Assembly (NCBI RefSeq): GCF_021869535.1
Contig: NW_026262712.1
Location: forward strand, 33,046,001 to 33,110,000
Length of the DNA stretch: 64,000 nucleotides
DNA from: Mytilus californianus
Taxonomy: Eukaryota
Reading direction: 5' to 3'
The notes beneath the pieces are model-generated. The model did not search any database, was not told the DNA's origin, and saw only the letters and a list, made by a program, of their open reading frames with translations. The position numbers and the translations under genes were made by a program. Numbering within the stretch: position 1 is the stretch's first letter; each line of letters begins with the position of its first letter. Below are positions 891 through 63,768 of this stretch, piece by piece.

Positions 891-3800
891 TCTTGTCTAG
901 TGAGATTCTAAAGATTGTTAATTTGATGTCTGAAATTATCAATCCAATATCACTGCCAGTTTCTTCTGAAAAAAGACATTTAAATCATTTATTTGACGAT
1001 GCATACAACACAGTGAATGCTTACTTTGTCTGTGCATCTGCTTTCATTCAAGTTCGTACAATTTCGCTTTCTTTGACTTCAATTTCTGTCTTAGCTTACA
1101 TTGGCTTTTGATATGTTTACTAAACATCGCTGTACTACTATCACATCAATTAAAGGTTTGCGGTCTCATTCTCCATCTTTGTAACCTTTTCCGATGTAAA
1201 AACAAGAGGTTTTAAAAAAGAAAAAAAAATCAATCAAAAGAAGTTGTGTTGAAATGATATGAAATCAATGGTCATAAATTGTGAAGCTTTTTATCTGAAA
1301 GTAATATACAGTTATTCAACAAGACAGTTACTTCTTCAAATGAATTTAATTTTGCAAGATACTTGTCAAGATAATGTCAACAGTTGCACAAAAGCTGATT
1401 GACTATTGTCAAAAAAGTAAGAATAAATCTCCACACATTTAACAACGTAGACTATAAGTGTTTATGCTGCAAAATAAAACAGGTTTGAATGAATAAGTAT
1501 AATTGTTTTATATGATTTGGTCCATATCAGATTGGACATCTTAATGAGTCAAGGAAATAAAGTTACATAATCTTTGAACATTGCAATCTATCTTATAAAA
1601 ACAGTAGACAAGAACATGCGTTCTATCTATCAGAAGTTAGATAATTAAAAAAAATCATCATTCAGTTATAATTCATTCAGGGTTAACATGATTGATATAG
1701 ACGATTTATGTAGCAAAATAGAGAGACAATGTTTCAAACAAAGTAAATGGGAAAAATGTAAAGAGACCTGAAAATCAAACAGGACATACACTTCTGTACG
1801 CACACTATCAAAACCAATATAAATATACAGCCATCCTAAAACTTTGATTAAGTAAAGGCAATTTCAAATTAGAATGCGGAAGCGTTATTACACTCTACGT
1901 ATGATACTCGAATTATTTGCGAAACCCAAAACAAAGTAATTTAGAAAAATGAGAACAAAACGTTCTTTTTAAAAGATAAAACGAAACTGTTATCTTCAGA
2001 TTGTAAATGAATTGAAGAACGCTTAAAATCGCTTTTTGGTAATTTAAGAATTTCTGTATAAAATACAAAATTTGTAAATTCCATTTGATGTCGATTCATA
2101 ACATTCTTTACACAGAAGCTAGACTACATCGATTTGAACATTCTTTGGTTCAAATTAACTGCCATTTTTGCAACACAAAAACAGTTTTTTTTTTTGTTTT
2201 TTTTTCATAATTGTAAGAATATCTACCAATTAATATTAGAATTGCAAACTATATTAACAAAAGTACACTACACAGTAGGTATTTATGACAGGTTTTTAAA
2301 GGAAAATATATAGCCTAATGTACATAGTCAAATGGACTATATGGAAACTTCGGAATCTAATAAAGTTTGAAAACATCACTTGCAATAGTAATAGAACTAT
2401 TAGACAATTCTAATGTGAACTAAAAGAAAATATCGTTTTGCGTTTAAATCATTTACACAATAAAGAACCAGATATCAATAATGATCTGGCACACTTATTA
2501 GATCAGATATGTAATAATGAGGTCAAGTGTTTACTTTCACATTTTTACAACTTCAATACATTCAATTAGAAAAACATGTGATTATGTCTACTTACTTATT
2601 ACATTTACATGGTTTATAAAAAAAATAGAGCAACGTACATAAACTGATTAAACAGATATCACTGTTTATAGATCTGGTGTGATCGATTTAATGTATTACG
2701 TTGGGTGTGTTGGACTTTTGTGTTAAATTGATATAAGAAAACTACAACATGTAATTTTATAAGTTATCTCATGAGAAAGCAACACAGGGATCCTAAGTAT
2801 GCTCTACTTTGCTACTAAGGTCATTGTAAAAGAATATTTGAAATAAACTGTATTTGAATTAAAAAAAAAAACGCTTAAAAAATTCTTAACATGGTTGATA
2901 TCCTCTTCATGTTCTTCTACAATTCTATTATTGGTCCAATTAATCAAATCTCAAGTATTGATTACCATAATCTTTATCTTAGTTCACAGCAGAAAAAAAT
3001 AGTTTAAAAAACAGTTTTGCGTCATTTGAATTTTTAAAATGTATCTCCACGATAATCAGCAGATATTAAACATCCCGGTTATAGCATAGTGTTCTTCATA
3101 TAATATCTTGTAATACGAGTTCTAACGGTAACTCAAAAAAAAAAGAGCTGATTTTACAAACATAAGTCTGCGGCAATCATTAAGAACTCCAAAAATTTTG
3201 AGCAGTGTGAAATGTTGTGATGTTGCCACTCCATAGATTACTTTAGTGTCAACATACGAATTGATAATTGCAACTTATATCATTCTATTTATCTTTATTT
3301 TATTTTTCATTGTGTTCCCAGTCCTGAAGGTTTATTGTCCTTTTAAATTTGATTCATTTGTATTTCCTATATTTGGATTTGACATATTTTCTAGAACACT
3401 ATTACTGAAATTACTTTCAAGGTCTTCAGTCTTCCCAAACTTCTCTTAGAAAATCAATAAAAAATTACTTAAATAACTTTATATGTTAAAAATTTTTTAT
3501 TAATGACGTTAATTTAACGTCAGAAGTCATACTTTCGACGCTGTTTAAAAAATTAGTTCATGGGAAGAAATTCTAACACTTCAATGGTTGCACCTCAAGC
3601 AATTAATGTTTAACATGTTTTAATTGCTAAAATATTCCTATGAGTTCCTTATTGATACTTGTAAAAATAATGAGAAAAGACAAATAGATTTCCTCATTTG
3701 CTATTGTTCTTTTTTAACTTTGGCTAGGAAATATCTTCTATATAGTGTTTTGTTAATATTTGATATGATATCCGTTGAAGGCATAAACGTATGGAGAGTT

Positions 3801-4277
3801 TTAATTTTTTCAAGTTTTGTTTTTCATTTATAGTTAGCTTTCGTCTTATGCTGTGACAATTAAATACATTAACCATATAAAAAATACAAAAACAAAATCA
3901 ATTCTTCACATTTTCTTATGAAATGTTTACATAATTATGATTTATTAGACACTCAGTGAAAAGAAATGTCAGCTTGTAGAATAGACCAAGAATAGTTGCC
4001 ATTGAGTAAATGTTATATAGAAAAGAATGAGAGTAGATAAGAGATATTCGTTTATGAGACAGCAACCCAATGACAAAACTAACAAATAAACACTTCAAAA
4101 GCTAACAAAACCTTTAAACAGACTTATTAAGAAGGGATATAGTTACGATACTGTTGTCAGGTCATTAAAGATTGCATATTTTGGCTTTAATATTGATTCA
4201 CTTATAGGGTCTTTGCATCGGAATTAAACATATTTATTCTAAAACCAGTTGTTGGCATGACACGGGTTATGTTCTTC

Positions 4278-4344
4278 TCATATATTTTATGATGGTATAA
4301 TACTAAACCCCTAACAGGAGGGATTGTGCCTGATATTCATATGA
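4278..4344 (+). promoter_or_regulatory. Form-2 SECIS element
   Basis: Helix I TCATAT(4278-4283)/ATATGA(4339-4344); core ATGA(4289-4292)...TGAT(4331-4334); helix II GGTATAAT(4294-4301)/ATTGTGCC(4323-4330); apical AAA (4305-4307); ministem CCC(4308-4310)/GGG(4320-4322). Confidence 0.85.
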
Positions 4345-4544
4345 TGAAGACAGAATCGTTCAATCAGTTTAATTGAGGTCTGGATCTGGCATGTCAGTAA
4401 CTGCTAGTAGTCTGTTGTTATTCATGTATTATTGTCATTTTTTTTTTTTTTTTTTCTTTTGTTTCCTATTATGACATCGGTTTCGGACTTCTCTTAACCT
4501 GAGTTTTACTGTGCGTACTGTTGTACGTTTGTTTTTTCTACATT

Positions 4545-4636
4545 GGCTAGAGGTATAAGGGGAGGGTTGAGATCTTAAAAAACATGTTTAACCCCGCCGC
4601 ATTTTTGCGCCTGTCCCAAGTCAGGAGCCTCTGGCC
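4545..4636 (+). ncRNA. Type-P3 twister-ribozyme-like motif
   Basis: P3 GGCTAGAGG(4545-4553)/CCTCTGGCC(4628-4636); P2 CCCC(4592-4595)/AGGG(4558-4561); L1 GAGG(4562-4565); predicted cleavage U4589^A4590; P5 CGCA/TGCG; P4 CCTG(4610-4613)/CAGG(4622-4625); L4 TCCCAAGT(4614-4621). Confidence 0.85.
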
Positions 4637-5629
4637 TTTGTTAGTCTTGTATCAAATTTTTAATTTTAGTTTCTTGTGTATAATTTGGAGTTTAGTATGA
4701 CGTTCATTATCACTGAACTAGTATACATATTTGTTTAGGGGCCAGCTGGAGGATGCCTCCGGGTGCGGGAGTTTCTCGCTGCATTGAAGACCCATTGGTG
4801 GCCTTCGGCTGTTGTCTGCTCTATGGTCGGGTTGTTGTCTCTTTGACACATTCCCCATTTCCATTCTCAATTTTATACAGAGGGTAGCATACAGACCGGT
4901 GTTGTTTTCTATAATATAAAAATGTTGGCCAATTTGTTTATCAAAATGATGCTTGAGATGATCAATCTTTTACAAAAATGGTACAAATAATATCGGTAAT
5001 TAATGATGAAAGAACTGATAATTATACCAATGATTATAATGCAGTCAGATTGAAATGAAGCATTATTTTGGCAATATCTCTGTTGGCTATCATATTATGA
5101 TATTGAGGTGACTTGAACAGACCACACATGATATGTTGAAAGATAGTATCTGATATAAAGTTGTTATATCATATGACGGTACAGCATCTGAAAAGAAGAA
5201 AGTATCCTCTGGTAAAAAACTCTTTTTTTTTATATGTCTAAAAATTTAAATGCTATAATGATTACAATTTGTATTTTTATGATTATTTTTAAATTGAATA
5301 TGCTCTGATCGTTGTAAGAAATGATAAAATTTTCAAAATATGTAATGTTCATTCAGTAGCTGTTACGATAAATTATTTGTGCGATTATCAAGCGAGTGAA
5401 AAGCAAATTTGTAAGAAATGAATATAAATATACAAAAAAGATAATTCGCTAAATTTGTCTCGCATGATATTACACTAGAAACAAAATGTTGAGAAATGTT
5501 AATACATTTAAGTGAATTCTGAAGCGTATCGTTTGTTTTAATATGAATAGTTAATGTTTAGAAAAATGAATCTATGAATGTTAATTCTGAGACAGAATAA
5601 TGCTGTTGACGCTTTTCATTTATGGAAAA

Positions 5630-6130
5630 AGCAAAATAACAAAAATAAGGAACTCCAACGAAAATTCAAAACAGTAAATCCCTTATCAAATGACAAAATC
5701 AAAAGAATGGAAAACAGCTGTCATATTCCTGACTTGGTAAGGCATTTCCTTAGGTAGAAAATGGTAGATTAAACCTGGTTTTATAGCTTACTTAACCTCT
5801 CACTTGTATGACAGTCGCATAAATTCATTGTCCATTACATTGACAACAATGTGTGAAAAAAACAAACAAACATAATAGGTAAAAATGTCAAAAAATTGGG
5901 GCACAACAGTAGACACTGTGTTATAATCTTAATCCATTTGAAAACAAAGAAATATGTCAACAAAGAAAAACAAAATGGCATATAGACAAGGCATATAAGC
6001 AAAACTGAAAGTCAAGAATACAAAAAAAAGGACCGTAGCACAATAACACAATGGCGGGATGAATAAGTACCGAGCCACGCCAAAAGGATATTACCAAAAA
6101 TTAATTAAACAGTAAAGGTTAATGATTTAC
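5630..6130 (-). mobile_element. Dispersed repeat (family B) with twister-like motif at 5718-5814
   Basis: P3 CTGTCATA/TATGACAG (8 bp); GTGA-GAGG-T; T^AA-TCT-AC; L4 TACCAAGT; 1-nt deletion in P4. Homologous to 9430-9695, 24545-24755 and 43164-43333. Confidence 0.75.
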
Positions 6131-7606
6131 AAAGACAATATGTTAAAATATCTAAAGTAAGGCAACCGTAATTTACAAATTATCAAGACTGATTAAGAAG
6201 ATACGAATTAAGATAACCACAAAAAACTGAGGAAATCGCATGATCTCCAAAAGAAACGAGACTGGGTGCAACGACAGGATAATCGTCGTGTCCTTTTCAT
6301 GTATCATCCGCCATGCGAAGCCACATTCATCCTAAATGTCACAATCAGAACTAGGCCACATTCGGTAAAATTACAGTTCAGACGACTTTCTTGGTATCTA
6401 GAGACCGTAGACCTAGATAAAATGTCGCTAGTGAGTTGAGACACCAGATTCATCCCTCAGCATGAAGAATTTTGTGAGTAGATGCTGTAAATTGTATCTA
6501 TTCATAGTCACTGTTTTAAGATATTGACCTACATAGATCAACAGAAGCAATTTTAGTAATTGCTTAATGATGTCTATTTTGATTCTTATAAACTGTTTTA
6601 AAATCTTCGTTTTTCTCGATTTAAATGTCTTTTAGGACATTTAGTATAGTTTTCTTTTAATTAAATGTGAAACGGTAGTATTTTCTAGGCATTACGAATA
6701 CTGGTAGCCTTTTTAGAATGTACAGCATCATCTAAAACTGACCCATTATCTATATGCCAACTTAACTGAAGTGTTCCATGTTAGCATTCAGAAATACATG
6801 CAAATATATATGACGAACTACTTTTTCTCCTGATATCTTTATAAACTGAAGGCTGGTAGCCATTTCAAATGGCATTGAATAATTCTTTTTTTTTTAAACA
6901 ATACAATTATTTTTTTTCTACACTTCACGTATCCTTCAGCTTGGAAAACATTGTTAGTTGATGCTGTATTTTTTGTCCAATCACAGTCAATGTGTTGTGA
7001 TATATTGACCTGAATAGCATGCACAAAACAGCAATCTATTTTCTGGAATGTAAATTCTACCGTTTCATCTGAATAGAGCTGAACATAACTATAGAAACTT
7101 GGTTTGTTGTACGGCCAATAAAGCTAGAAAAAAAAAGAAGATATCAAGAGGACATTAGAATGAACATTTGGGGAGTAAATTCCTAGTCTTAATCGTTTTT
7201 AGGTATATTTATGTATTTATGTATATATTTAGGGGTAGGGGGCTTTACTTCGCTGCATCTTCTTACCTCTCAACTGGTCGTCCCAACAAATTTGTTTTCT
7301 CTAAATATTCGTTAGGGGGCCATGAACTGATTCTGGTAATATTTTTACTTTTGAAAACGATTAAAAAAAATACCAGGAATTTATATTACTTATAGGCTGT
7401 GTTTAAAGAATAAGCATACACGATTCTTTAATTATGTAATCGCTATTTTACGAAATTTTCCTTTGATCTTGCTGACTGATACCTTCCTTTCTCAGCGGAG
7501 TCGAGTGATATGAAAAATTATCGCTAGAAACTTAGGGGGCACGTGGCGTTGCTAATGAAATTGACATGAAATTGACAACGTTGTCATAGGTAAAATAGCG
7601 TTAAAC

Positions 7607-7705: not shown

Positions 7706-9429
7706 ATAAGTGTTTCAATTGATTCGCTTCTAAACAACGCAGAATTGTATCCTTTGAATTTATGATGAACATAGAATTGATTCAGCAACACCTATGAAAA
7801 GCATGCACTACGTGTACAACATGAGCTTTTAGACAGCCGATATGAGGAAGTCAAATGTTTCATGTTGTTACTCTTTATGAAACAAGACATTCCACTTGAT
7901 TTGAACTTTCGTGGATAGTTGTCTCGTTGGCAATCATACCACATTTCCTTATTTTTATAATGTTATCGATAAAAACAAATTTTATGTTATTTGTATCTTA
8001 AAGTATAAAAGTATAAAAGCATTAATAAACTTAACTGTACTTATAATTGCTTTATGAAGATTGACATCAAGTTCTACAAAGCAGTAATAACTGTTGGCAT
8101 ATTAATTGGCTATAAATTTGTAAATGTTTACTCTGGTTTATTATTTTAATCATACCATTATCGTGGATATTTCATTTTACTCGTGTTTAACGGCAGGAAT
8201 TTGCACTTGTGTAGTATGTCAGTTACACAAAGACTCAAGTACGAATGAACCAAATTTAACTCGTGCAACAACATAACTGATATCGATATCATGACTTGTT
8301 ACCAAATCAACACCAATTAGAAATAGTAATTTTAAAATGTTTCGGTTTAAAAAAAATTTAAATTATTTTAAATAATCTCATTCTTTCATGACTATGATCC
8401 TTTGTTAATGTTAGGCTAAACAGTTTTAGATTTTGGATTTTTAAATATTTTGGTCTTGAGTAGCACTGAAGAGATGTTTATTGTTGAAGTGGGAATCTAG
8501 TGTAGTGAAGTTGGTGCAGTTAATATAATCCCAAGATATCGGTAATTCGTACTGAAGATTTTCTTCCTCGTTTCATTGCACTAGTGAATGTTTTTCAATC
8601 GTCAATGAGATGAAGATTTGAAATCAAAACCAACGGTGACAAATAGTGTCTGTTTCATTGATTTAAATATATTTGATGCTCGGTATATCGTTAGACACTT
8701 GTCTTTTTTTTGAAAATCATATGTTTGCGATTTTTTACTGTTAAGTTTTTGTTTTTGCTTTTTGCTTCGTTTCATTCATCGATGTCGTGGTTCGGTACTT
8801 ATACATCCCGTCAATGTGTTTGTATTATCTTTCATTTTTGCTGGTGTATTTTGTACGTGTGACTTTATGTGTTTCTTTGGTACATATGACGTGGCTCTGT
8901 ACTTTTAAAGATCCCACCATTTTGTTATTGTTCTATTATAATATCATTATGTTCTTATTCTATTATAATTTTGAAAAATACTTTGAACGACAAAATTATT
9001 TTACTCGCGTAGTGGTATTAACCATATGTGTATTCTTAAAAATTCTAAAGAACTGGATAATTTCAAATCTCGGTCTTTTCTGAAATTAGTTCCAACAAAA
9101 ACTCTTGATTTTTCAACCCTGTATACCACCATTCCCCATGTGAAACTATAGTTTTTAAATTACTTTGAACGACAAAATTATTTTATATTTCTTCCTGTGT
9201 GACGTTTACATTTTCTGGCGTCAAACACGCAACTTTATACTAAGAGTAGCAGTCACAGAAATTTATAAATAGTTCAATCCTTTATGGGTTGATTTATAAT
9301 ACATATATAAGTAAGCAATGAATGCGGTTGTTAAATTTGATAGATACTTTTTGTGCATCTTTGTTAAATGTTTGTTTGTTTTGAGATTGTGACACAGTGA
9401 TGACTGCTGTGCCCATATTTTGACAATGT

Positions 9430-9695
9430 TACCTATTATGTCTGTTTTGTTCACGCATCCTTGTAAATATAATGGAATTCGAAGCGACTGTTATACAAGT
9501 GAGAGGTATAGCGCTATAAAACCAGGTTTAATCCACCATTTTCTACATTTGAAAATGCCTGTACCAAGTCAGGAATATGAAACTTGTTGTCCATTCGTTT
9601 GATGTGTTTTATCAATTGATTTTGCCATTTCATTAGGGACTTTCCGTTTTGAATTTTCCTCGGAATTCAGTATTTTTGTGATTTTACTTTTTATT
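9430..9695 (+). mobile_element. Family B repeat with near-intact twister-like core at 9488-9583
   Basis: GTGA-GAGG-TATAGCGCTATA...T^AA-TCC-AC-C-ATTTTC..GAAAAT-G-CCTG-TACCAAGT-CAGG. Confidence 0.8.
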
Positions 9696-9845: not shown

Positions 9846-9918
9846 TTTTCGGCTGTTGTCTGCTCTTTGGTCGGGTATTTGTCTTTTTGACATATTCCCC
9901 ATTTCCATTCTCAATTTT
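9846..9918 (+). mobile_element. Extreme 3' fragment of the Naiad 3' UTR
   Basis: TTCGGCTGTTGTCTGCTCTTTGGTCGGG...CATATTCCCCATTTCCATTCTCAATTTTA matches ~4805-4875. Confidence 0.8.
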
Positions 9919-11804
9919 AAGATCAACCACCTTTTTTTCTTTTTTTTCTTTTTTTTGCTGAGGTTCGTGCGTGTTGCTCAGTCTTTATTTTCCACGTAGT
10001 GATTTGTGGATGAATGTTCGTTTTTTTGTCCTAATTGATTTTTGTCCAGGCGTTGTTAATTTCTCTATTTGACCTTTTTAGGGGGTTTTGAATTTTCCCT
10101 ATTTATTTTCCAAATAAGAACTGGGGTAACAATGAAATACATGTATTAAAATGGCTTTAAATGATCTTCTATCTGTTTCAAATTTCAAAAAGAAAAACGA
10201 TTGAGATATTGCATACATTTATACATTTATTAAACCTTCTCGGTTTGAAATATGCGTTAATAGCGTTTAACAGGCAATATTAAAGGTTCAAGTATGAACG
10301 AAGGTGTCTTTAATATGTGCAAAAATAAATGTTTTAGCAGAGAAATTATTAAAATCTTTGGTTTTATCTAGTTGTTGTTTTAATTTTGTTATACATTCAG
10401 TAGCTAGGTTCATAGCTCAACTTCATATAAACAATTAGTTACTCAAATTTTTGAAACAAATTACATTTTTATCAATAATAAGTTGATACAAGGCATGATT
10501 GTAAGAAACAATTTCACTTTTAATTAATAATGTGCAGATAAATCTATAAAAAAAAAATAGAAAAACACCTGTAGATTTGCTTTTCTGCACGTATAACTGA
10601 TGATTTTCAGCAAAAACAAGAAACTTCATCTTAGAAGGAACAAACACTTGCTGTCTTTTTAAAACTGTCAATTCATAAAAGATAAATATAATTCCAAACA
10701 AAATTGCAGCTGAAAATCAAATCAACTTAAATATCATAAATGTTGACGTTTTTCATTTATTTCGTATGCATTTAATTATGGCAGAATAAAAGATAGGTCG
10801 AGATGACGATTTAACATGCAAATCTTTCAAATAGATTACTTGGGTTTCTAAAATGTCTTACAATGGTATGGGAAGAAATTGATTATAAACTGTATACAAA
10901 CAACTAATTGAAAAATATCGAAATATACTAGAAGCGTGTACAGGTGAAAATTGATAAAAAATATTAAAAAACATAGGGTTTGACTGCGATTTTCATTTTA
11001 TAATATTTAGATTAGGAAAATGCAAGAGGTATTAAAAATATTTAAATGTTTTAATGTTATAACCTTGCATCGCACAAGTAAAACTCGATTAAAACATACC
11101 TTATAGTCTAATGCGTTATAGATCACTTAAAGATCAACAGAATATATGATCGTTTGATAAAGTAAGACACACTTTTACAAAATCTGCAATTTCTAGTGCA
11201 TTTGTTTTTAAATTATCCTTCTAACAGTTCAAACGAGCAACCTCATATTGTTGCGCTTATTAATAGGAAACAAACATTTTAAAGCAGACGTAATCTAAAT
11301 TGGATCTCTAAGCAATGTTTTATTTAATTGCTTTAATATTTGAACATGACAAATCTGTTGATGTGCGTTAAAGTATTCTTCATCTAATTATTAAGCACTT
11401 TTAAATTAACGATGCATTAAGTAGCCTTCCATGGTTGAAATATGTATTAGAGACAAGAAACTTTACAGGTTCAAAAGTGTAAAAGAAGGTGTCTTTAATG
11501 CGTGCAAAATTTAATTCTTCCGGAGAGGCAGTTTTAAAATTCCAGTTTTTAACTGTAGCTTGTTATACATTGCATTTGTAAGGTTTAAAGCTAAACGTAA
11601 TATTAACAATAAATTACTCAAATTTTGAAAGCCAACGGTTTCTTCTGTTATCAATTATTAGTTGATAAAATGAAAGATTTAAAACCAATATTTTACTTTC
11701 TTTTAATACAGTACAGATTAATCTAATTGGAGAATATGAAACTGTAGATTTGCTTTTTTGAACGTATAAAACTAATGATTTTCAGCAAAAATAAATGCTT
11801 TTAG

Positions 11805-18074: not shown

Positions 18075-18448
18075 CATTTATGTATTTCTCTGTGCTGGGT
18101 TGTTTTGTGTTTGTTTGTACTGAATTTCTGTCACGCAGTGTTATCCATTTAGTGGTATTTTTAACATTGCCATATAAGCGGGAGGTTATGCTGGCCATAA
18201 AACCAGGTTCAACCCACCATTTTTTCTTAAAATGTCCTGTACCAAATCAGGAATATCGCAGTTGTTATCAGACAGTCCGTTTCTGTGTATGTTAGTGTTT
18301 GCTTTTTTTGTAGTTCAGTGTTTCTGAAGTTCCGTTGTTTTCCTCTTATAGTTGATGTGTTTCCCTCGGTTTTAGTTTGTTACCGGAATTGTTTTTGCTT
18401 AATCGAATTATGACTATTGAACAGCGGTATACTACTGTTGCCATTATC
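18075..18448 (+). mobile_element. Dispersed repeat (family B') with twister-like motif at 18168-18260
   Basis: P3 TGCCATAT/ATATCGCA; GCGG-GAGG-T; C^AA-CCC-AC; P5 ATTTT/AAAAT; P4 TCCTG/CAGGA; tail GAACAGCGGTATACTACTGTTGCC shared with 11805-12050, 24293-24479 and 45085-45497. Confidence 0.75.
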
Positions 18449-24544: not shown

Positions 24545-24755
24545 TTGATGTTATTGTTGTCAATATAATTGAATTCAATGCGACTTTCATACAAGTGAGA
24601 GGTTTAGTTAGCTTTAAAACCAGTTTTAATCCACCATTTCCTACATGAGAAAATATCTGTACCAAGTCATGAATGTGACAGTTGTTTTCGATACATTTGA
24701 TGTGTTCGATCTTTTGTTTTGCCATTTGATAAAGGACTTTCCGTTTTGAATGTTG
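24545..24755 (+). mobile_element. Family B repeat with decayed twister-like motif at 24584-24681
   Basis: Homologous to 9430-9695; P4 mutated. Confidence 0.7.
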
Positions 24756-43163: not shown

Positions 43164-43333
43164 TACACTCCAGGGAAAATTCAAAACGGAAAGTGTCTTA
43201 TCAAATGGCAAAATCAAAATCTTAAACACAATAAACGAATGGAAAACAACTGTCATATTCCTGACTTGGAACAGGCAGTTGTTTATGTAGAGAAAGGTGG
43301 ATTTAATCTGGTTTTAAAGCTAGCTAAACGTCT
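43164..43333 (-). mobile_element. Family B repeat fragment, truncated at about the L1 strand of the twister motif
   Basis: Reverse complement contains AATCCACC...GCCTGTTCCAAGTCAGGAATATGACAG and the family B tail. Confidence 0.65.
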
Positions 43334-45084: not shown

Positions 45085-45497
45085 TGGGTTGATCAATGTT
45101 ATTGTTTATTTGTGTGTTTCTCTGTCCTGTATGGTCTTCCATTTATTTGTATTGTAGTCCTGTCATGTAATGTTTTCATTTTAGTGTTATATTTAGCATT
45201 GCCATTAAAGCGGGAGGTTTGGCTAGCCACAAAACCAGGTTCAACCCACTATTTTTTCTTAAAATGTCCTTTACCAAGTCAGGAAAATGGCTATTGTTAT
45301 CTTATAGTTCTTTTCTCTGTGTGTTGCATATGTTTGCTTATTTCTCTGTGTGTTGCATTTTAGTGTTTCTCTTATGTCTTTGTTCTCCTCTTATATTTGA
45401 CGTGTTTCCCTCAGTTTTAGTTTTTAACCCGGATTTGTTTTTTCTCAATCGATTTATGAATTTCGAACAGCGGTATACTACTGTTGCCTTTATTTGT
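45085..45497 (+). mobile_element. Family B' repeat with twister-like motif at 45200-45292
   Basis: Homologous to 18075-18448 over its length. Confidence 0.75.
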
Positions 45498-47779: not shown

Positions 47780-48087
47780 AATGCCTTTTATTGTGTGTCT
47801 TTTTATGTTGTAATGTTATACCACTGTTTCGGGTTAGGGTGAAGGTTGGCGCCTGTTAAAACGTTTAAAACCCGCTGTATTTTTATGCATCTGTCCTAAG
47901 TCCGGAGCCTGTTGTTCAGTGGTTGTCGTTTGTTGGCGTGGTTCATAAGTGTTTCTCGTTTCTCGTTTTTTATATAGATTAGACCGTTGGTTTTCCTGTT
48001 TGAATTGTTTCATGCTAGTCTTTTTGGGGCTCTTTATAGCTTGCTGTTCGGTCTCATTGGCACTCATACCACATCTTCTTATTTATA
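47780..48087 (+). mobile_element. Family C repeat with twister-like motif at 47821-47922 and an internal deletion in the tail
   Basis: Same sequence as 455-890 in opposite orientation; P4 partly decayed. Confidence 0.8.
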
Positions 48088-58150: not shown

Positions 58151-59033
58151 CCATCTATCAAATATTTGAGAGTAATTTAGCATGTTGAACGATTTAGAAG
58201 AATATTATTTTCTATAGCTGCATAAAATTGTATCACTAAAAGGTTTTTTTTTTATTATTACACTGTAAATCCATATGGGAAGTGGTTAAAACATATATCA
58301 GCAAACATTTTGGAAAATGTCATATAAATCATACAATTTCATTCATGTTAGATAAATGTTTATTCACATATATTTTCAAGGGCCCCCTGCCTTCAATCTA
58401 GTTTCTAACTTTTTTTAAAGACTTTTTTGTACGCATATTGTATTCCGACCCTCGGCAATGCGGATATGATCAAATCAGTTTTGTATAATATAGATTAAGA
58501 AGTCAAAATAGCGTACATAAGGACCGTCTTAAACTTGCTGTGAGGTAGGAGATTTTTTGTTGTTTTTTGTTTTTGTTTTTTTTTTTTAAAGTCCATATTG
58601 TGACTTTGAGGTGATGAACAGCAATAAAATGGGTGTTCCTTTGCTTTTCTGTGTGCTTTTGCTGTGTATGTACTGATTTTGTGTTATGAATGGATACCCC
58701 ATATCCTTTGCGTTTCTATTAGTGCAAAACAATCCATAAAGACACTGAACCATATTTAAAGAATAGTTTACATACAGCAAATCCAAGATATGTGTATAAA
58801 ATTGAGAATGGAAATGGGGAATGTGTCAAAGAGACAATAACCCGACCAAAGAACAGAAAACAGCCGATGGTACCATTGGGTCTTCAACACAGCGAAAAAA
58901 TCACGCACCCAGAGAGGGCTTTAGCTGGCCCCTAAACAAAAATGTGTACTAGTTCAATGTAAGTGGACGACACACTAACTTCCAAAACATATAAATGAAC
59001 TTAAATTAAAAAAAACCATACAAGACTAACAAA

Positions 59034-59125
59034 GGCCACAGGAACCTGACTGGGGACAGTCGCAAAAATGCAGCGGGGTTAAACATGTTTTGTGAGATCT
59101 CAACCCTCCCCCTATACCTCTAAAC
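59034..59125 (-). ncRNA. Type-P3 twister-ribozyme-like motif in the Naiad 3' UTR (degenerate)
   Basis: GGGG-GAGG-G ... T^AA-CCCC-GC-TGCATTTTTGCG-ACTG-TCCCCAGT-CAGG; L4 and P4 carry substitutions relative to the copy at 4545-4636. Confidence 0.7.
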
Positions 59126-59321
59126 AATGTGAGTTAACAAACACACAGCAATACGCACAGTAAAACTCAGTTTAAAAGACGTCCGAGTCCGATTTCAGAA
59201 TAGGTAACAAAAGAAACTAGGCAAAATGACAATGATACATAAATTAACAAAAGACTACTAGCAGTTACTGGCATGCCAGCTCAAGAACCTCAGTCAAACT
59301 GATTGTAAGATTATGTCTTTA

Positions 59322-59388
59322 TCATATGAAAATCAAGCACAATCCCTACCGTCAGGGGTTTAGTAACATACCATTATAAAATATATGA
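59322..59388 (-). promoter_or_regulatory. SECIS-like element with mutated core (AUAA instead of AUGA)
   Basis: Minus strand reads TCATATATTTT-ATAA-TGGTATGTTACT-AAA-CCCCTGACGGTAGGG-ATTGTGCT-TGAT-TTTCATATGA, ~50 nt downstream of the ORF stop; homologous to the intact copy at 4278-4344. Confidence 0.75.
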
Positions 59389-59438
59389 GCAGAACATTAC
59401 CCGTATCATGCCAACAACTGGTTTTAGAATAAATATGT

Positions 59439-62400
59439 TTATTTCCGATGCAAAGACCCTATGAGTGAATCAATATTAATACCAAAATATGCCATCTTTA
59501 ATGACCTGAGAACAGTATCGTAACTATATCACTTCTGAATAAATCTGTTTAAAGGTTTTGTTAGCTGTAGGGGTGAATGTTGACATTTTTGTGCTTTGTA
59601 TAGAATATTACCATAAAGGATTGGATGTGAAATACCTGAACGTTTAAGATGTCTGCATGTTGATTTATATTTACGAATGATGTCCTTGTATCGATGATAA
59701 AATTTAGTAAATGTTTTGACTAGTTTGTGATATCGAAAACCATGATGTAATAATTTTTCAGTAATACAGTGATTTATTTCGTTGAAATTAAATACGTTGT
59801 TAAGTATGTCAATGTATGTGGTAAAGTGGTATTTTAGGATATTTGTATTTTATATATAAGTTTGATTATTTCTATATTTTTAATCTAACTTTATTATTTC
59901 AGAAGATATTATTATTAATGCACTATACGGAGTGTAATTTCAGGTTTGTTCAGGTGTGACCTTATCAGGCGTTTCACTTAGGTTTTATTGGTACTGATTA
60001 GTTCCCAATTCTTTGGTGGGAAGTTTATATTCTATATGGTCACTTTGTGTGATGGACACCATTTTCCATGTTTAGCAAATTGTAAAATTATATTCTGTTT
60101 TGGAGTTTGTTTTTCATGTTTATAAGGTCAGTAATTCTTCTTATACTAATATATTAAATATTTTTCTTTATAACCAGATTTATGCATGATTTATGAATGT
60201 TATGAATGAATGCATGTTTGAATGATGTGTAGATGTGATATGTAAGTATAATGAAAGGAAATGTAAAAGAATTTAAAATCTCTTTAATAATTGTGCTTTT
60301 ATGGTTAAATACGGTAAATTATATAAAACAGCTAAATTTCAGTAAATTGGATTAAACTATTGAATCTTGTAGAAAGAATGATTTATAATAATTTCAGATT
60401 TGAATAAAGTCATAAATTGATAAAGACATCAGATATCTTATTTTAATATGAACGTGTAGTAGCGCTATATATTTAGAATAGGTTAGTTATGATTTTAATA
60501 TTTGTACTATATGTATTCACCATATTGATGATGCACCATGTTGGCATCAACCTGATGTGATTTGAATATTGTCGTATTTCAAGCCTTCACAAATACCTGT
60601 GAGGTAGGTTTTGTTATGTTGAATCTATGTGTGTTTTGCTTATTGAAATGTCTGATTTAGAAAGTGCTTAATGTTTTGTGTGCATGTATATTCTAGTATT
60701 GCATGTATATGTTATTTTTAAATATGCTTATTTAAATTTGGTATTTAACAGTTTATTACATGACTGTTATTATGTATTACAAATACACCGACATATGCAT
60801 TATGATTAGAAATTGGCATTTAGTTGTATTCACAAACAAAAGAATTGGAGATCACTATTTCCGAACTTAATGAAATTATATATTATTATTTTATTATTGA
60901 AATGCTTGGAAAAGTAAACAGTTTTCTTGTTCATAATTGTTAACAAAATGTTTTAAAGCTATATCATGTATATAGTTATTTAATTAGATTACATCCATTA
61001 ATATAATGTATTGTTATTAAAGGGTATTATTTTGGATTACGATATATATACTTCGAAATAAAGAATCCGTAACCCTAAGACAGTTTCTTGTGTGTATTGC
61101 CCCGAAACAAGACTACATATACACGAGCGAATCGAACAAGTTGAGATATTTAAACACCATAAGATGGTGACAGTGGGAACTTCACCATCTAAAAATGGAT
61201 AATTAACAATAGGAAATGAAATGAAAAATCATCTCTTTTATCATAAATTTTGGTATTAAGCTTCCCGTTTAAGATATAGATATCAAGATCCAGGAAAGGG
61301 CAGTGTTCATTGTTAGTATTAGCTTTATCTAAAGTCAATTCAGCTGGATAAATCTCTTTTATTATTGAACATACTGAAGTCGTCATTATATATTAAGAAC
61401 CGATATATCATCCAAATATCTAAAAGTGTTATTAAATTTATGTATCAGATCTTGTTTCGATGGGTCTTTGCTGATTTTAGTCATAAATTCTAACTCATAA
61501 CAATACAGAAACAGGTCCGCAATAAGTGGTACACAGTTAGTCCCCATTAGAATTCTGATAACTTAACGATATACGGAATCTCCATAGCGAACAAAAATGT
61601 TATCTAGTAAAAATTCAAGGGCAGTTATCGAATCAAAGCAGTTCCAATTGGTGCAGTTCTTTTGTTTGTTGTTACTAAAAAAATACCTAAAAGAGTTTGA
61701 ATATTTTTATTCTAATTCTGACTTTTTAAATGCCCATTTAATTAGGTGTGTGAATTTTTTCTTAATAAGATTATAAGGCAAAGTGGTATATAGGGTATAA
61801 AAATCAAAACTTTCAGCAGATTCGAAATCACCAATATAAGCATGCAATTTAGCAAGTACTTTCAACGAATTTTTGACACTCCAAAAGTAATTAGTTCCAC
61901 TATTTTCAAAGGCCTTATTTGAACAATTCATTCCCAGGTTTTTTATTGTACCAAGTGTACTAGTAAGTAGAATAGACAGTTAAGTAGTGGAACAATGGCT
62001 TGCAGACGAAATAAATCTATATTTATAAGGTGTTTTGTGCAGCTTCGGAAGCCAGTACATAGTTGGAACTTTCATTGTATTTGGTTCTGCTTGTAAAGAG
62101 GTAGTTAAAAGTTTATGTTTGTTCCAGATGTCATTTTCCGAAAATGGAGTCGGTTGGAATGTTGGTAAATTCGTGATTTCCTTTCGCAGAACCTCGATGT
62201 AAAATTTAAGTCAAACAATAATGATATTATTAGCAGCCTTATCAACCGGAACAAAAACAAATTCAGTGGAGAGTACTTTTAGATTATGCTTGATTCGAAA
62301 AATATGGCTATTATGGTTGTTGTTAGGAGTAAAATGTTCTTTAAAATGTTTAATACGAATATAAACTATGTTCATTATTGAATTAAAAGAGGAATCAAAG

Positions 62401-63768
62401 GATTTTTTGTCAGCTTTTTCTAGTTCTATCCATTTCGAGCAGTAAGTACGGAGTGAGTCGTGGATGATGTTATGACACTCATTCCTATTAATTATTGACG
62501 GCGGGGGCGATATTTAGGTCCTTTACTGAGGAATGATTTCAACTCTCGGTCATAAACGATGTTAAGGCCTCCTGGGGAATGGGGCCATAAATGTATTTGG
62601 AATTACTGCAATTTCATGTCGAAGGTGTATTGTCACTGATATTAACATCTTTACACACTTCGCTATAATAAAACACACATTTCCGGGTAGATTTTTTGTA
62701 TACATAACAAAAAAGACGGAGTTCAGTATTATCAAAATAGCCAGGAATGTGTTCTTCAACAGAATGATCATTAAAAATACCGGCAATATTTACAAAATCA
62801 AAACCTTTATTGGCATATTTGACTTTAGTCAAATGTTTTTTATGATCTTCTGGGCGATCAATTTTTAGAAACAGTTTAGAATAACAAAATGCAGTTATAA
62901 ATGGGACGATTTCATACTTAGGACTGCAATATGGAATTGTGTTGCAATCCTCAAAAATATGGTGTAATTTATTAACAGGTAAAGAACAGAGCTTGGTTAA
63001 CAGATAATGTGTGCCCTTGTTTTTTGAAATAGTAATTAGGTCCGAACTATTTGTGTTGTTGGTACGAAACTTTCGCTGATTGCGATTTATTCTACGCCAA
63101 TGAGAACGGTTTTTACGAACAGTTTTAGAAACTATATTTAAAATGTTAACAGAATCGGTTCTTGCTATATTACCAATTCCCATGATATTATCATTTAGAC
63201 CGAGAGGATAGACTGTCTGTAATTTCTTAATCCAATTTGATTTAATTATTTTCCGTGATCGTACAAACTTTGAATGAGATTCCACAGGCTGCTTATTTAC
63301 TACTTCTAAAGGTTGAACTGTTAAATATTAAATAGGATGATTGTGCCTCTTAAGGTGTTGATAAATGATACTTTTAAATTTATTGGGTCTTTTAAAACGA
63401 TAAAGGTGTTCTTGCGTGTGTTTAGATAAAAAGCGTCCAGTTTCACTTACGTACTGAATACCGCATCCCGGTTTGTTTCGTGTGAGTAAATAGATAATAC
63501 TGTTAGTTTTTCAATTTATATCCGTTTCAAAATTTAAGGAAAATGTGCGACCATTAAACGTGGACCCTACCGTATTGTTGGTTGAAAGACGGGGACATGT
63601 AAGTCATATTTTGGCATGACACTTATCGATAGAAGGGTAATCACGATTGTTATTATTAAAAATGTTAGCGATAGTAGTATTTTTAGATAAGAGATTTTGA
63701 AGACTGAGACGTGTAGATACCCTTTGAACGAGTTTGGTATTTAGTATTTTTCCATTTTTGAGTTTCAT
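59439..63768 (-). pseudogene. Disrupted EN-RT polyprotein ORF of the Naiad element; putative former selenoprotein
   Basis: Probable ATG at 63768 and terminal TAA at 59439-59441. One continuous frame from 63768 to ~62575 with TGA at 63604, 63511 and 62614 and TAA at 63328. Frameshifts near 62570, 62500, 61390, 61210 and 61165; TGA at 62211; TAA at 61980, 61707 and 61563. The C-terminal part resumes at ~59800 after the insertion. Confidence 0.9.
59798..61117 (+). mobile_element. ~1.3 kb insertion splitting the RT C-terminus; solo-LTR candidate
   Basis: RT-like homology stops at ~61115 and resumes at ~59802. The insert can be read as TGTTA...CTACA with AATAAA at 61057-61062. No clean 4-6 bp TSD is visible; a TA duplication is the alternative reading. 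Confidence 0.5.

Follow-up and report, generated by a model that had tools for sequence, protein, structure and literature searches.

A 64,000-nt stretch of the Mytilus californianus genome (contig NW_026262712.1, positions 33,046,001 to 33,110,000 of the forward strand; hereafter, the window) contains, at positions 4100-4877 (+), a copy, truncated on its 5' side, of a Naiad-type Penelope-like element (PLE) of ~4 kb in which the stop codon of the open reading frame (ORF) is followed, in this order, by a selenocysteine insertion sequence (SECIS), a motif of the twister ribozyme class and a tail that reaches the end of the element. Both folds, their covariation, the conserved order of these features and the co-divergence of the twister with the reverse transcriptase (RT) are established by the comparisons described below, and the identity of the element is supported by its motifs. 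Our interpretation, to which we assign a probability of roughly 60%, is that the 3' untranslated region (UTR) of a selenoprotein-coding Naiad holds a SECIS together with a twister-class ribozyme that is inherited with the ORF and processes tandem or read-through RNA.

SECIS and twister motif in the window copy

The window copy retains the 3' end of the Naiad ORF (4100-4227, +; identified with tblastn), that is, the last 42 codons and the TAA stop codon at 4225-4227. The SECIS (4276-4345, +), with an AUGA quartet, an AAA apical motif and a UGAU 3' side, begins 49 nt past the stop codon. It was matched by Rfam SECIS_1 (RF00031) at 4279-4343, with 29.8 bits, below the gathering score of 35 (E-value 0.0017 in a 1.3-kb search), and, with 67 bits over 4276-4345, by our own model R2, which was built on the SECIS sequences of 11 elements from different lineages. 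In the RF00031 alignment, the window copy displays the AUGA...GA quartet, the AAR apical motif and a helix 2 of ~10 bp. Across the 11 elements, 12 of the 14 helix pairs of the consensus hairpin are compensatory, and AUGA, AAA and UGAU are conserved. The SECIS gathering score is exceeded by four hits in relatives of the element (L036, L040 and two in L041; designations of this form denote individual loci), with 39-45.8 bits, and R2 detects SECIS outside its training set, in L044 and, in decayed form, in the second Naiad copy of the window. By eye, SECIS-like hairpins with a GUGA or UUGA quartet, not AUGA, are found in L039 (~3150-3215) and L035 (~4475-4560); both loci keep all four in-frame UGA codons of the element.

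The twister motif lies about 245 nt beyond the SECIS. Its core (4558-4625, +) is delineated by a descriptor parse, pair counts, 75 bits with our covariance model R1, which was derived from 13 twister instances, and a Rfam Twister-P5 match, and is enclosed by P5, a 9-bp helix in the minimum-energy fold formed by GGCUAGAGG (4545-4553) and CCUCUGGCC (4628-4636). From 5' to 3', the parse places P2' at 4558-4561, the G4562-A4563 dinucleotide, in which G is the catalytic position, T1 at 4564-4566 (GGG), P2 at 4592-4595 (CCCC), T2 at 4596-4597 (GC), P3 at 4599-4601/4606-4608, and P4 at 4610-4613/4622-4625 (CCUG/CAGG), with the loop UCCCAAGU at 4614-4621. By the twister consensus, the predicted cleavage site falls between U4589 and A4590, the latter followed by A4591; T1 and this U-A-A are separated by a 23-nt spacer, and the 288 nt from 4590 to 4877 form the 3' tail, the end of which is common to 25 copies. 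The arrangement is the P5-open permutation (type P5). The fold energy of the motif is -39.4 kcal/mol (z = -3.8), and none of 200 shuffled sequences folded as well. All the coordinates of the series that the original prediction had read from the DNA, namely, stop codon, SECIS, twister with its predicted cut and a tail of ~290 nt, are confirmed.

Conservation and covariation among relatives

A search with the RT part retrieved 3243 homologues, from which 15 contigs from at least 10 other assemblies, with 49-77% RT identity, were studied together with 13 loci of two further families in the same genome; the survey leaves out the non-selenoprotein Naiads of other phyla. All relatives with enough 3' flank yielded a twister match on the ORF strand, 230-770 nt after the stop codon, and in most of them a SECIS, which either overlaps the stop codon or follows it within ~130 nt, lies between the two. 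The order stop, SECIS, twister, tail is kept in the lineages sampled, so that the series first noticed in the window holds in at least 10 other assemblies and in the two further families of this genome.

The full twister architecture could be parsed in 12 of the 14 instances, with strands that differ between lineages and remain complementary: CCCC/GGGG, GCCC/GGGU, CCAC/GUGG and ACCC/GGGU for P2 (5'/3'), GGG/CCC, AGG/CCU, UGG/CCA and AGA/UCU for T1, GC/GU, AC/GU, CC/GG and UC/GG for T2, and CCUG/CAGG, AUCG/CGAU and ACCG/CGGU for P4. P3 and P5 are wholly different in sequence between lineages, with complementarity kept; for P5, this is the case in L034, L035, L036, L040 and L041. In an alignment of 13 twister sequences in which both pseudoknots were written in, 92.3% of the cells of P2, P3, P4, T1 and T2 are paired, compared to 28-45% in controls in which the partners were slid by 1-3 columns, and 10 of the 17 pairs, including pairs in both pseudoknots, are compensatory. 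No shuffle out of 500 reached the observed pairing or covariation score; the 13 sequences represent only about five independent lineages, so that the shuffle count overstates the significance, whereas the slid controls and the pair types are independent of that.

Considered one by one, P2 is paired in 94% of the cells, with two of the four pairs changing on both sides and a closing pair that is C-G, A-U or G-U; in P4, three of the four pairs are compensatory, and the 8-nt loop U-NNN-AAG-Y is conserved. T1, in which the NNN of this loop pairs with the three nucleotides after G-A, is paired in 87% of the cells, its first pair being A-U in six sequences and G-C in six; T2, between the two nucleotides after P2 and the last two of the loop, reaches 96%. 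The AA after the cut site and the G-A opposite are invariant in 13 of the 13 aligned elements, and the nucleotide preceding the cut is U in nearly all of them.

R1 also recovered the motif at the expected place in loci on which it had not been trained: L039 (68 bits), L043 (60), L042 (41), L037 (38) and L044 (30), 11 of the 12 loci of the second family of this genome (L051-type, 56-71 bits), L057-L060 (69-73 bits) and L061 (58 bits). Altogether, these untrained matches, on the predicted strand and with E-values from 1e-4 to 1e-14, extend to at least nine further lineages. A sub-threshold Rfam score is what would be expected if an abundant repeat resembled a twister by chance; this explanation is effectively refuted by the covariation, with compensatory changes in both pseudoknots that no shuffle equalled, and by the position-specific matches. 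The claim that the twister fold is real and conserved is borne out by the covariation in P2, P3, P4, T1 and T2.

The similarity of the twister sequences correlates with that of the RT (Mantel r = 0.70; 0 of 5000 permutations), that is, the twister co-diverges with the RT and, therefore, the module was inherited with the element rather than captured repeatedly. In L036, the SECIS-twister unit is present twice, at 5174-5554 and 6019-6399, 845 nt apart, as expected of a pseudo-long terminal repeat (pLTR). The two units of this locus differ in the first of the two palindromes considered below (AGGUACCU and AUGGCCAU, respectively) and are nearly identical in the remainder.

The co-divergence bears on a possible origin of the twister from an independent, small, non-autonomous, retrozyme-like parasite that was inserted or captured in Naiad tails, in which case the series with the SECIS would be incidental. 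Such an origin would be compatible with the ~300-nt, ORF-less, twister-centered elements in the window (47786-48082, and 836-459 on the minus strand), with RNA reads whose sequence switches, immediately 5' of P5, to that of other origin (loose ends at L033 9549), and with the suggestion of Craig et al. that ribozymes possibly parasitize PLEs (PMC8557442). We nevertheless consider it quite improbable, given that the motif occupies the same relative place in each sampled Naiad lineage, in three families of this genome as well as in at least 10 other assemblies, and co-diverges with the RT; it is more economical to derive the short elements from the Naiad tail, in parallel to the relationship between hammerhead retrozymes and PLE pLTRs (bioRxiv 10.64898/2026.07.22.740005).

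The host element

A sequence search identified more than 3000 candidate copies of the window element's family in the 1.65-Gb genome, the best 40 of which are 94-96% identical to the window copy; the similarity within the family is 95-98%. When the genome copies are oriented, their 5' break points are scattered and the 3' end is single and common, a signature of target-primed reverse transcription. Comparison of 25 copies places the element end at 4877, the flanks diverging directly past ...CAATTTTA.

Two copies, L033 (5884-9890) and L031, reach about 4.0 kb. The reading frame of L033 extends from the ATG at 6238 to the TAA at 9244-9246 and is interrupted only by TGA codons at 6400, 6493, 6526 and 7801. 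TGA occurs at the same four sites, all conserved Cys positions, in L035 and L039, and other in-frame stops are absent from these three four-TGA ORFs. When TGA is read as selenocysteine (U), the N-terminal part of the L033 translation contains a CxxxxUxxC motif and then a U just before a GIY-YIG-like IIYLL...YVDETG block, the start of which reads IIYLLT-U-NKPGC. Further on, the first Cys position of a CCHH-like finger is a U; a SCNCS (CxC) linker follows, and then come PADKAANN, with a U eight residues after DKA, and an RT with YLDD. The residue eight after DKA is encoded by TGA in eight lineages and is a Cys in L036 and L061. The window fragment, the ORF tail of which is 93% identical to residues 960-1002 of the full-copy protein (tblastn), is truncated 3' of all four UGA codons.

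Pfam searches with the ORF pieces detected no significant domain, so that the assignment to a clade relies on motifs. The classification of the host as a Naiad-type, selenoprotein-coding PLE is supported by these motifs and the selenocysteine positions: the GIY-YIG-like motifs, the DKA with a UGA eight codons on, and the four UGA codons match the description of Naiads in PMC8557442, in line with the original prediction. Its statement that Naiads lack canonical hammerheads is likewise made in PMC8557442, and Rfam finds no hammerhead in the full element at E-values up to 5. Other Naiad-like traits of this family are the 5'-truncated copies, the tandem-junction reads described below and the repeated SECIS-twister unit of the relative L036. 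With a Naiad RT query, 79,303 first-look candidates were obtained genome-wide, and Naiads appear to form a large share of the repeats of this genome.

Missing P1 helix and palindromes

The absence of P1, which went unremarked in the earlier reading of this DNA, is relevant to the way in which the motif might function. In no lineage is there complementarity between the nucleotides 5' of U4589 and those 3' of T1. In place of the 3' strand of P1, there is a first palindrome, UUGAGAUCUUAA (4567-4578, +), which is a perfect 12-mer in the family majority; a palindrome scan revealed a second one, AAACAUGUUU (4580-4589, +), the last nucleotide of which directly precedes the predicted scissile bond. 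Across the elements, the first palindrome takes at least 12 different palindromic sequences, among them GGGAUCCC, GAGAUCUC, GAGCGCUC, GGGCCC, AGGUACCU, AUGGCCAU, GGCGCC and UGGUACCA. The second varies less (AAACAUGUUU, AAACCGGUUU, AAACGUUU, AAACUAGUUU and AAAUGCAUUU). Counting Watson-Crick palindromes with a minimal length of 6 nt, all 26 instances contain one or more (9.1 expected from shuffles), and 22 contain two (4.9 expected).

Palindromy that is kept despite sequence change points to pairing between two copies of the RNA. A role in RNA dimerization unrelated to catalysis fits the palindromes equally well. The motif might be a twister-derived structured RNA that no longer cuts and that serves as a binding site for the RT or as a dimerization element, its palindromes functioning in the way of a dimer initiation site of retroviruses. 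Such a function would agree with the lack of P1 and the conservation of the palindromes, and also with the occurrence of the module, together with the terminal tail, in short non-coding elements, as for a recognition module that acts in trans. On the other side, nucleotides that matter for catalysis only, namely, the G-A that follows P2', the A-A just past the cut and the U-NNN-AAG of the loop, are invariant or nearly so at ~50% protein divergence, and a mere binding hairpin would not need covariation of both pseudoknots. We consider a non-cutting RNA rather unlikely, and retain a ribozyme that processes RNA as the preferred interpretation.

Evidence bearing on cleavage

Cleavage between U4589 and A4590 is predicted from the sequence by analogy to the twister consensus, and several observations weigh against it. 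In the window copy, two positions differ from the family majority, A4558 in place of G, which weakens P2, and U4576 in place of C, which weakens the first palindrome; three of the four P2 pairs are formed, with an A·C mismatch. In the majority variant, P2 is intact (4/4) and the first palindrome perfect. P1, taken as a helix of at least 2 bp, is not formed in any lineage in alignments inspected by eye. The Rfam Twister-P5 model (RF02684) matches with 19.2 bits against a gathering score of 37.6, and in a 121-nt search only; the Rfam twister models gave no match in searches of 1.3 kb, 4 kb and 64 kb and none above threshold in the relatives. The low score and the invisibility of the motif in ordinary scans result from the P3 insertion and the unpaired P1 region, which cost score. 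At gathering thresholds, Rfam as a whole finds nothing in the 64-kb window, and a whole-genome search with its twister models, which scored only 79 of about 36,000 candidates, is uninformative.

Also among the unfavorable evidence are the transcripts. We placed the reads of four raw-read RNA-seq runs on the full copy L033, with a threshold for read ends of five molecules and one fifth of the local depth. In these runs, all of them standard libraries, a type not made for the recovery of 5'-OH or cyclic-phosphate ends, neither read starts nor read ends are in excess at the position of the predicted cut (L033 9604/9605), and none of the four shows a clear depth step near it. The original prediction had suggested mapping RNA ends to 4589/4590; in the four runs, ends do not accumulate there, down to one fifth of the local depth, and a lack of pile-up is also what a non-cutting RNA would produce. 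The depth climbs steadily to the 3' end and is about equal on both strands, which indicates that most of the reads come from truncated copies inside other transcripts, that is, from read-through. Assembled contigs of other samples that contain relatives of the element run through the motif with no ends at the cut, an observation of little weight. Finally, 4877 and not the predicted cut is where the DNA copies terminate, and hence the cut RNA cannot be a simple template for target-primed reverse transcription. Overall, the RNA-seq data neither support nor exclude cleavage.

In two of the four runs, reads join L033 9894 to 5884, that is, the 3' end to the 5' start, with a 23-nt filler, which implies that head-to-tail arrays are transcribed across the junction. 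These tandem-junction transcripts leave room for the idea that RNA read from a tandem copy would owe its 5' end to cleavage; read ends do not accumulate at the predicted site. In the window copy, ACAGAG, a sequence related to the junction filler, is located just past 4877. One run, X22, contains a transcribed variant at L033 9592-9671 that lacks P3-P4, with AACCCC joined directly to UGGCC.

Proposed mechanism

Under the preferred interpretation, the SECIS would recode the in-frame UGA codons of the element as selenocysteine, and the twister would cut long or tandem read-through transcripts between U4589 and A4590, in the manner of the hammerheads that canonical PLEs carry in their terminal repeats. 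With the cut 3' of the SECIS, the coding RNA would not lose it: the ORF and the SECIS would stay together after cleavage, and the 288-nt tail would remain attached to the downstream sequence. In head-to-tail arrays, cleavage of an upstream copy would create the 5' end with which the next unit starts. A 3' UTR ribozyme with constitutive activity would normally destabilize the element's own mRNA, another consideration that speaks against such activity here. The expected loss of mRNA and the ends of the DNA copies at 4877 favor, in our view, a conditional ribozyme that mainly processes multimeric or read-through RNA, a role that has been proposed for the PLE hammerheads. Without an intramolecular P1 and with conserved palindromes, the monomer would have low activity and two motifs would pair; such dependence on pairing would spare single-copy mRNA constant self-destruction. 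We infer catalysis, the dependence on pairing and the biological role from these features. The suggestion that a twister takes the role of the hammerhead in Naiads is partly supported: the fold, with its covariation, and the order of the features are conserved, and the four RNA-seq runs provide no cleavage signal.

A more elaborate scenario is possible, although we hold it as doubtful. The P1-less twister might be active only when two copies pair via their lineage-specific palindromes, converting tandem RNA into RNAs of unit length that contain the SECIS and have 5'-OH and cyclic-phosphate termini, which perhaps are circularized and reverse-transcribed by rolling circle; the short elements would then be twister counterparts of the hammerhead retrozymes. 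Rolling-circle copying of circularized RNAs, if true, would explain the pLTR architecture.

Other copies and twister-like modules in the window

The window contains a second, older, near-full Naiad copy on the minus strand (58793-63768; tblastn), with the SECIS at 59390-59321 (R2, 47 bits) and the twister at 59112-59045 (R1, 72 bits). The segment 59566-58793 of this strand is 85% identical to the copy at 4100-4879. Both motifs have decayed: in the SECIS, AUGA has become AUAA, and in the twister, GCC has changed to GAC and CCCAAG to CCCCAG, and P5 is broken. The same order of features reported at 58.8-59.4 kb is present, with the qualification that it is on the minus strand, belongs to a near-full copy (63768-58793) and comprises decayed motifs. 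The older copy shows ~80% protein identity to the young family and contains a tblastn gap of ~1.3 kb (61120-59807), a sign that the RT region may have undergone an insertion or rearrangement.

The short (~300 nt) non-coding repeat at 47786-48082 (+) and 836-459 (-) contains neither a SECIS nor an ORF. It starts ~50 nt before a well-formed twister core that scores 73 bits with R1 and has ACCC/GGGU as P2 and AGG/CCU as T1. This repeat looks like a non-autonomous derivative of the Naiad tail, a possible twister counterpart of the hammerhead retrozymes. Weaker twister-like modules, with 23-44 bits, are found at 5728-5803 (-), 9499-9573, 18178-18251, 24595-24671, 43260-43333 (-) and 45210-45283. 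They have in common the loop UACCAAGU, a GGU that matches it for T1, and P3 stems that are long, with deviant P2 and T2, and could be either active variants or relics. About 275 nt after the module at 9499, the end of a short non-coding element (9848-9919) shares the terminal 72 nt of the Naiad (93% identical).

Comparison with known systems

Selenoprotein-coding Naiads of clams and spiders with a SECIS in the 3' UTR have been described by Craig et al. 2021 (PMC8557442). The element analyzed here resembles them in the N-terminal GIY-YIG, the DKA, the SECIS just past the stop codon, and three UGA positions: the Cys that precedes GIY-YIG, the first Cys in CCHH and the residue eight past DKA. The differences are the distance between the stop codon and the SECIS, 49 nt here vs 1-21 nt there, the host genome and the families involved. 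Furthermore, PMC8557442 describes Naiads without a canonical hammerhead and never mentions twister; no ribozyme is described there for these elements.

Twister variants known as T-variants lie at the 5' terminus of the Perere-3/RTE non-LTR retrotransposons of Schistosoma mansoni (Liu et al. 2021, PMC8501958; PMC7761336). The shared features are a twister-class motif inside a retrotransposon, an unusual or absent P1 and a proposed role in transcript processing; a twister without P1 can cleave, with low efficiency (PMC8501958). The T-variants, however, occupy the 5' end of a LINE-like element, form P1 partly from the target-site duplication and have been shown to cleave in vitro and in reporters, whereas the motif described here follows a SECIS in a PLE's 3' UTR and has palindromes where P1 would be, and its cleavage is predicted. 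Compared to Rfam Twister-P5 (RF02684), the permutation is the same and the core strings GAGGG, AA, GC and GUCCCAAG are shared; the sub-threshold score goes along with an inserted P3 hairpin, a P1 that is not formed and a loop that ends in GU rather than GC. The Rfam twister models thus miss thousands of genomic copies, given the more than 3000 candidates of a single family in this genome.

Our literature search for twister together with SECIS, Naiad, Crassostrea or bivalves, with most subscription journals outside its reach, found nothing relevant, and a search with the loop string returned unrelated primer matches only; two papers on short interspersed elements of bivalves do not contain the motif. 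Provisionally, then, given this coverage of subscription journals, the view that the SECIS-twister combination is undescribed stands: no paper linking the two was found. We regard the motif as a member of the twister class without P1, in a new host element and at a new position, with the same provisional status as to its being unpublished.

To our knowledge, canonical PLEs always carry hammerhead ribozymes. The report that the highly successful Naiad clade has none raised doubt whether ribozymes matter to PLEs at all. A conserved twister at the equivalent place, if true, would mean that the ribozyme requirement was kept and met by another class. The fixed order of SECIS and ribozyme would, in addition, offer a natural system for studying a selenoprotein mRNA with a self-cleaved 3' end.

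According to PMC6765202, which cites Cervera & de la Pena 2014 and Lunse et al. 2017, the PLE hammerheads are located in the pLTRs, and the minimal ones have no stable closing helix and cleave as dimers. The likeness lies in tandem or partial-tandem arrays and in a PLE that has a small self-cleaving-ribozyme motif close to its 3' end or in its terminal repeat; by analogy, the missing P1 and the palindromes described here may parallel the dimer-acting minimal hammerheads. The ribozyme class, twister, and the host clade, Naiad, are different, and the activity is predicted here. This would be the first twister tied to a PLE, with an architecture that suggests a dimer and, in this respect, echoes the dimeric hammerheads of the canonical elements.

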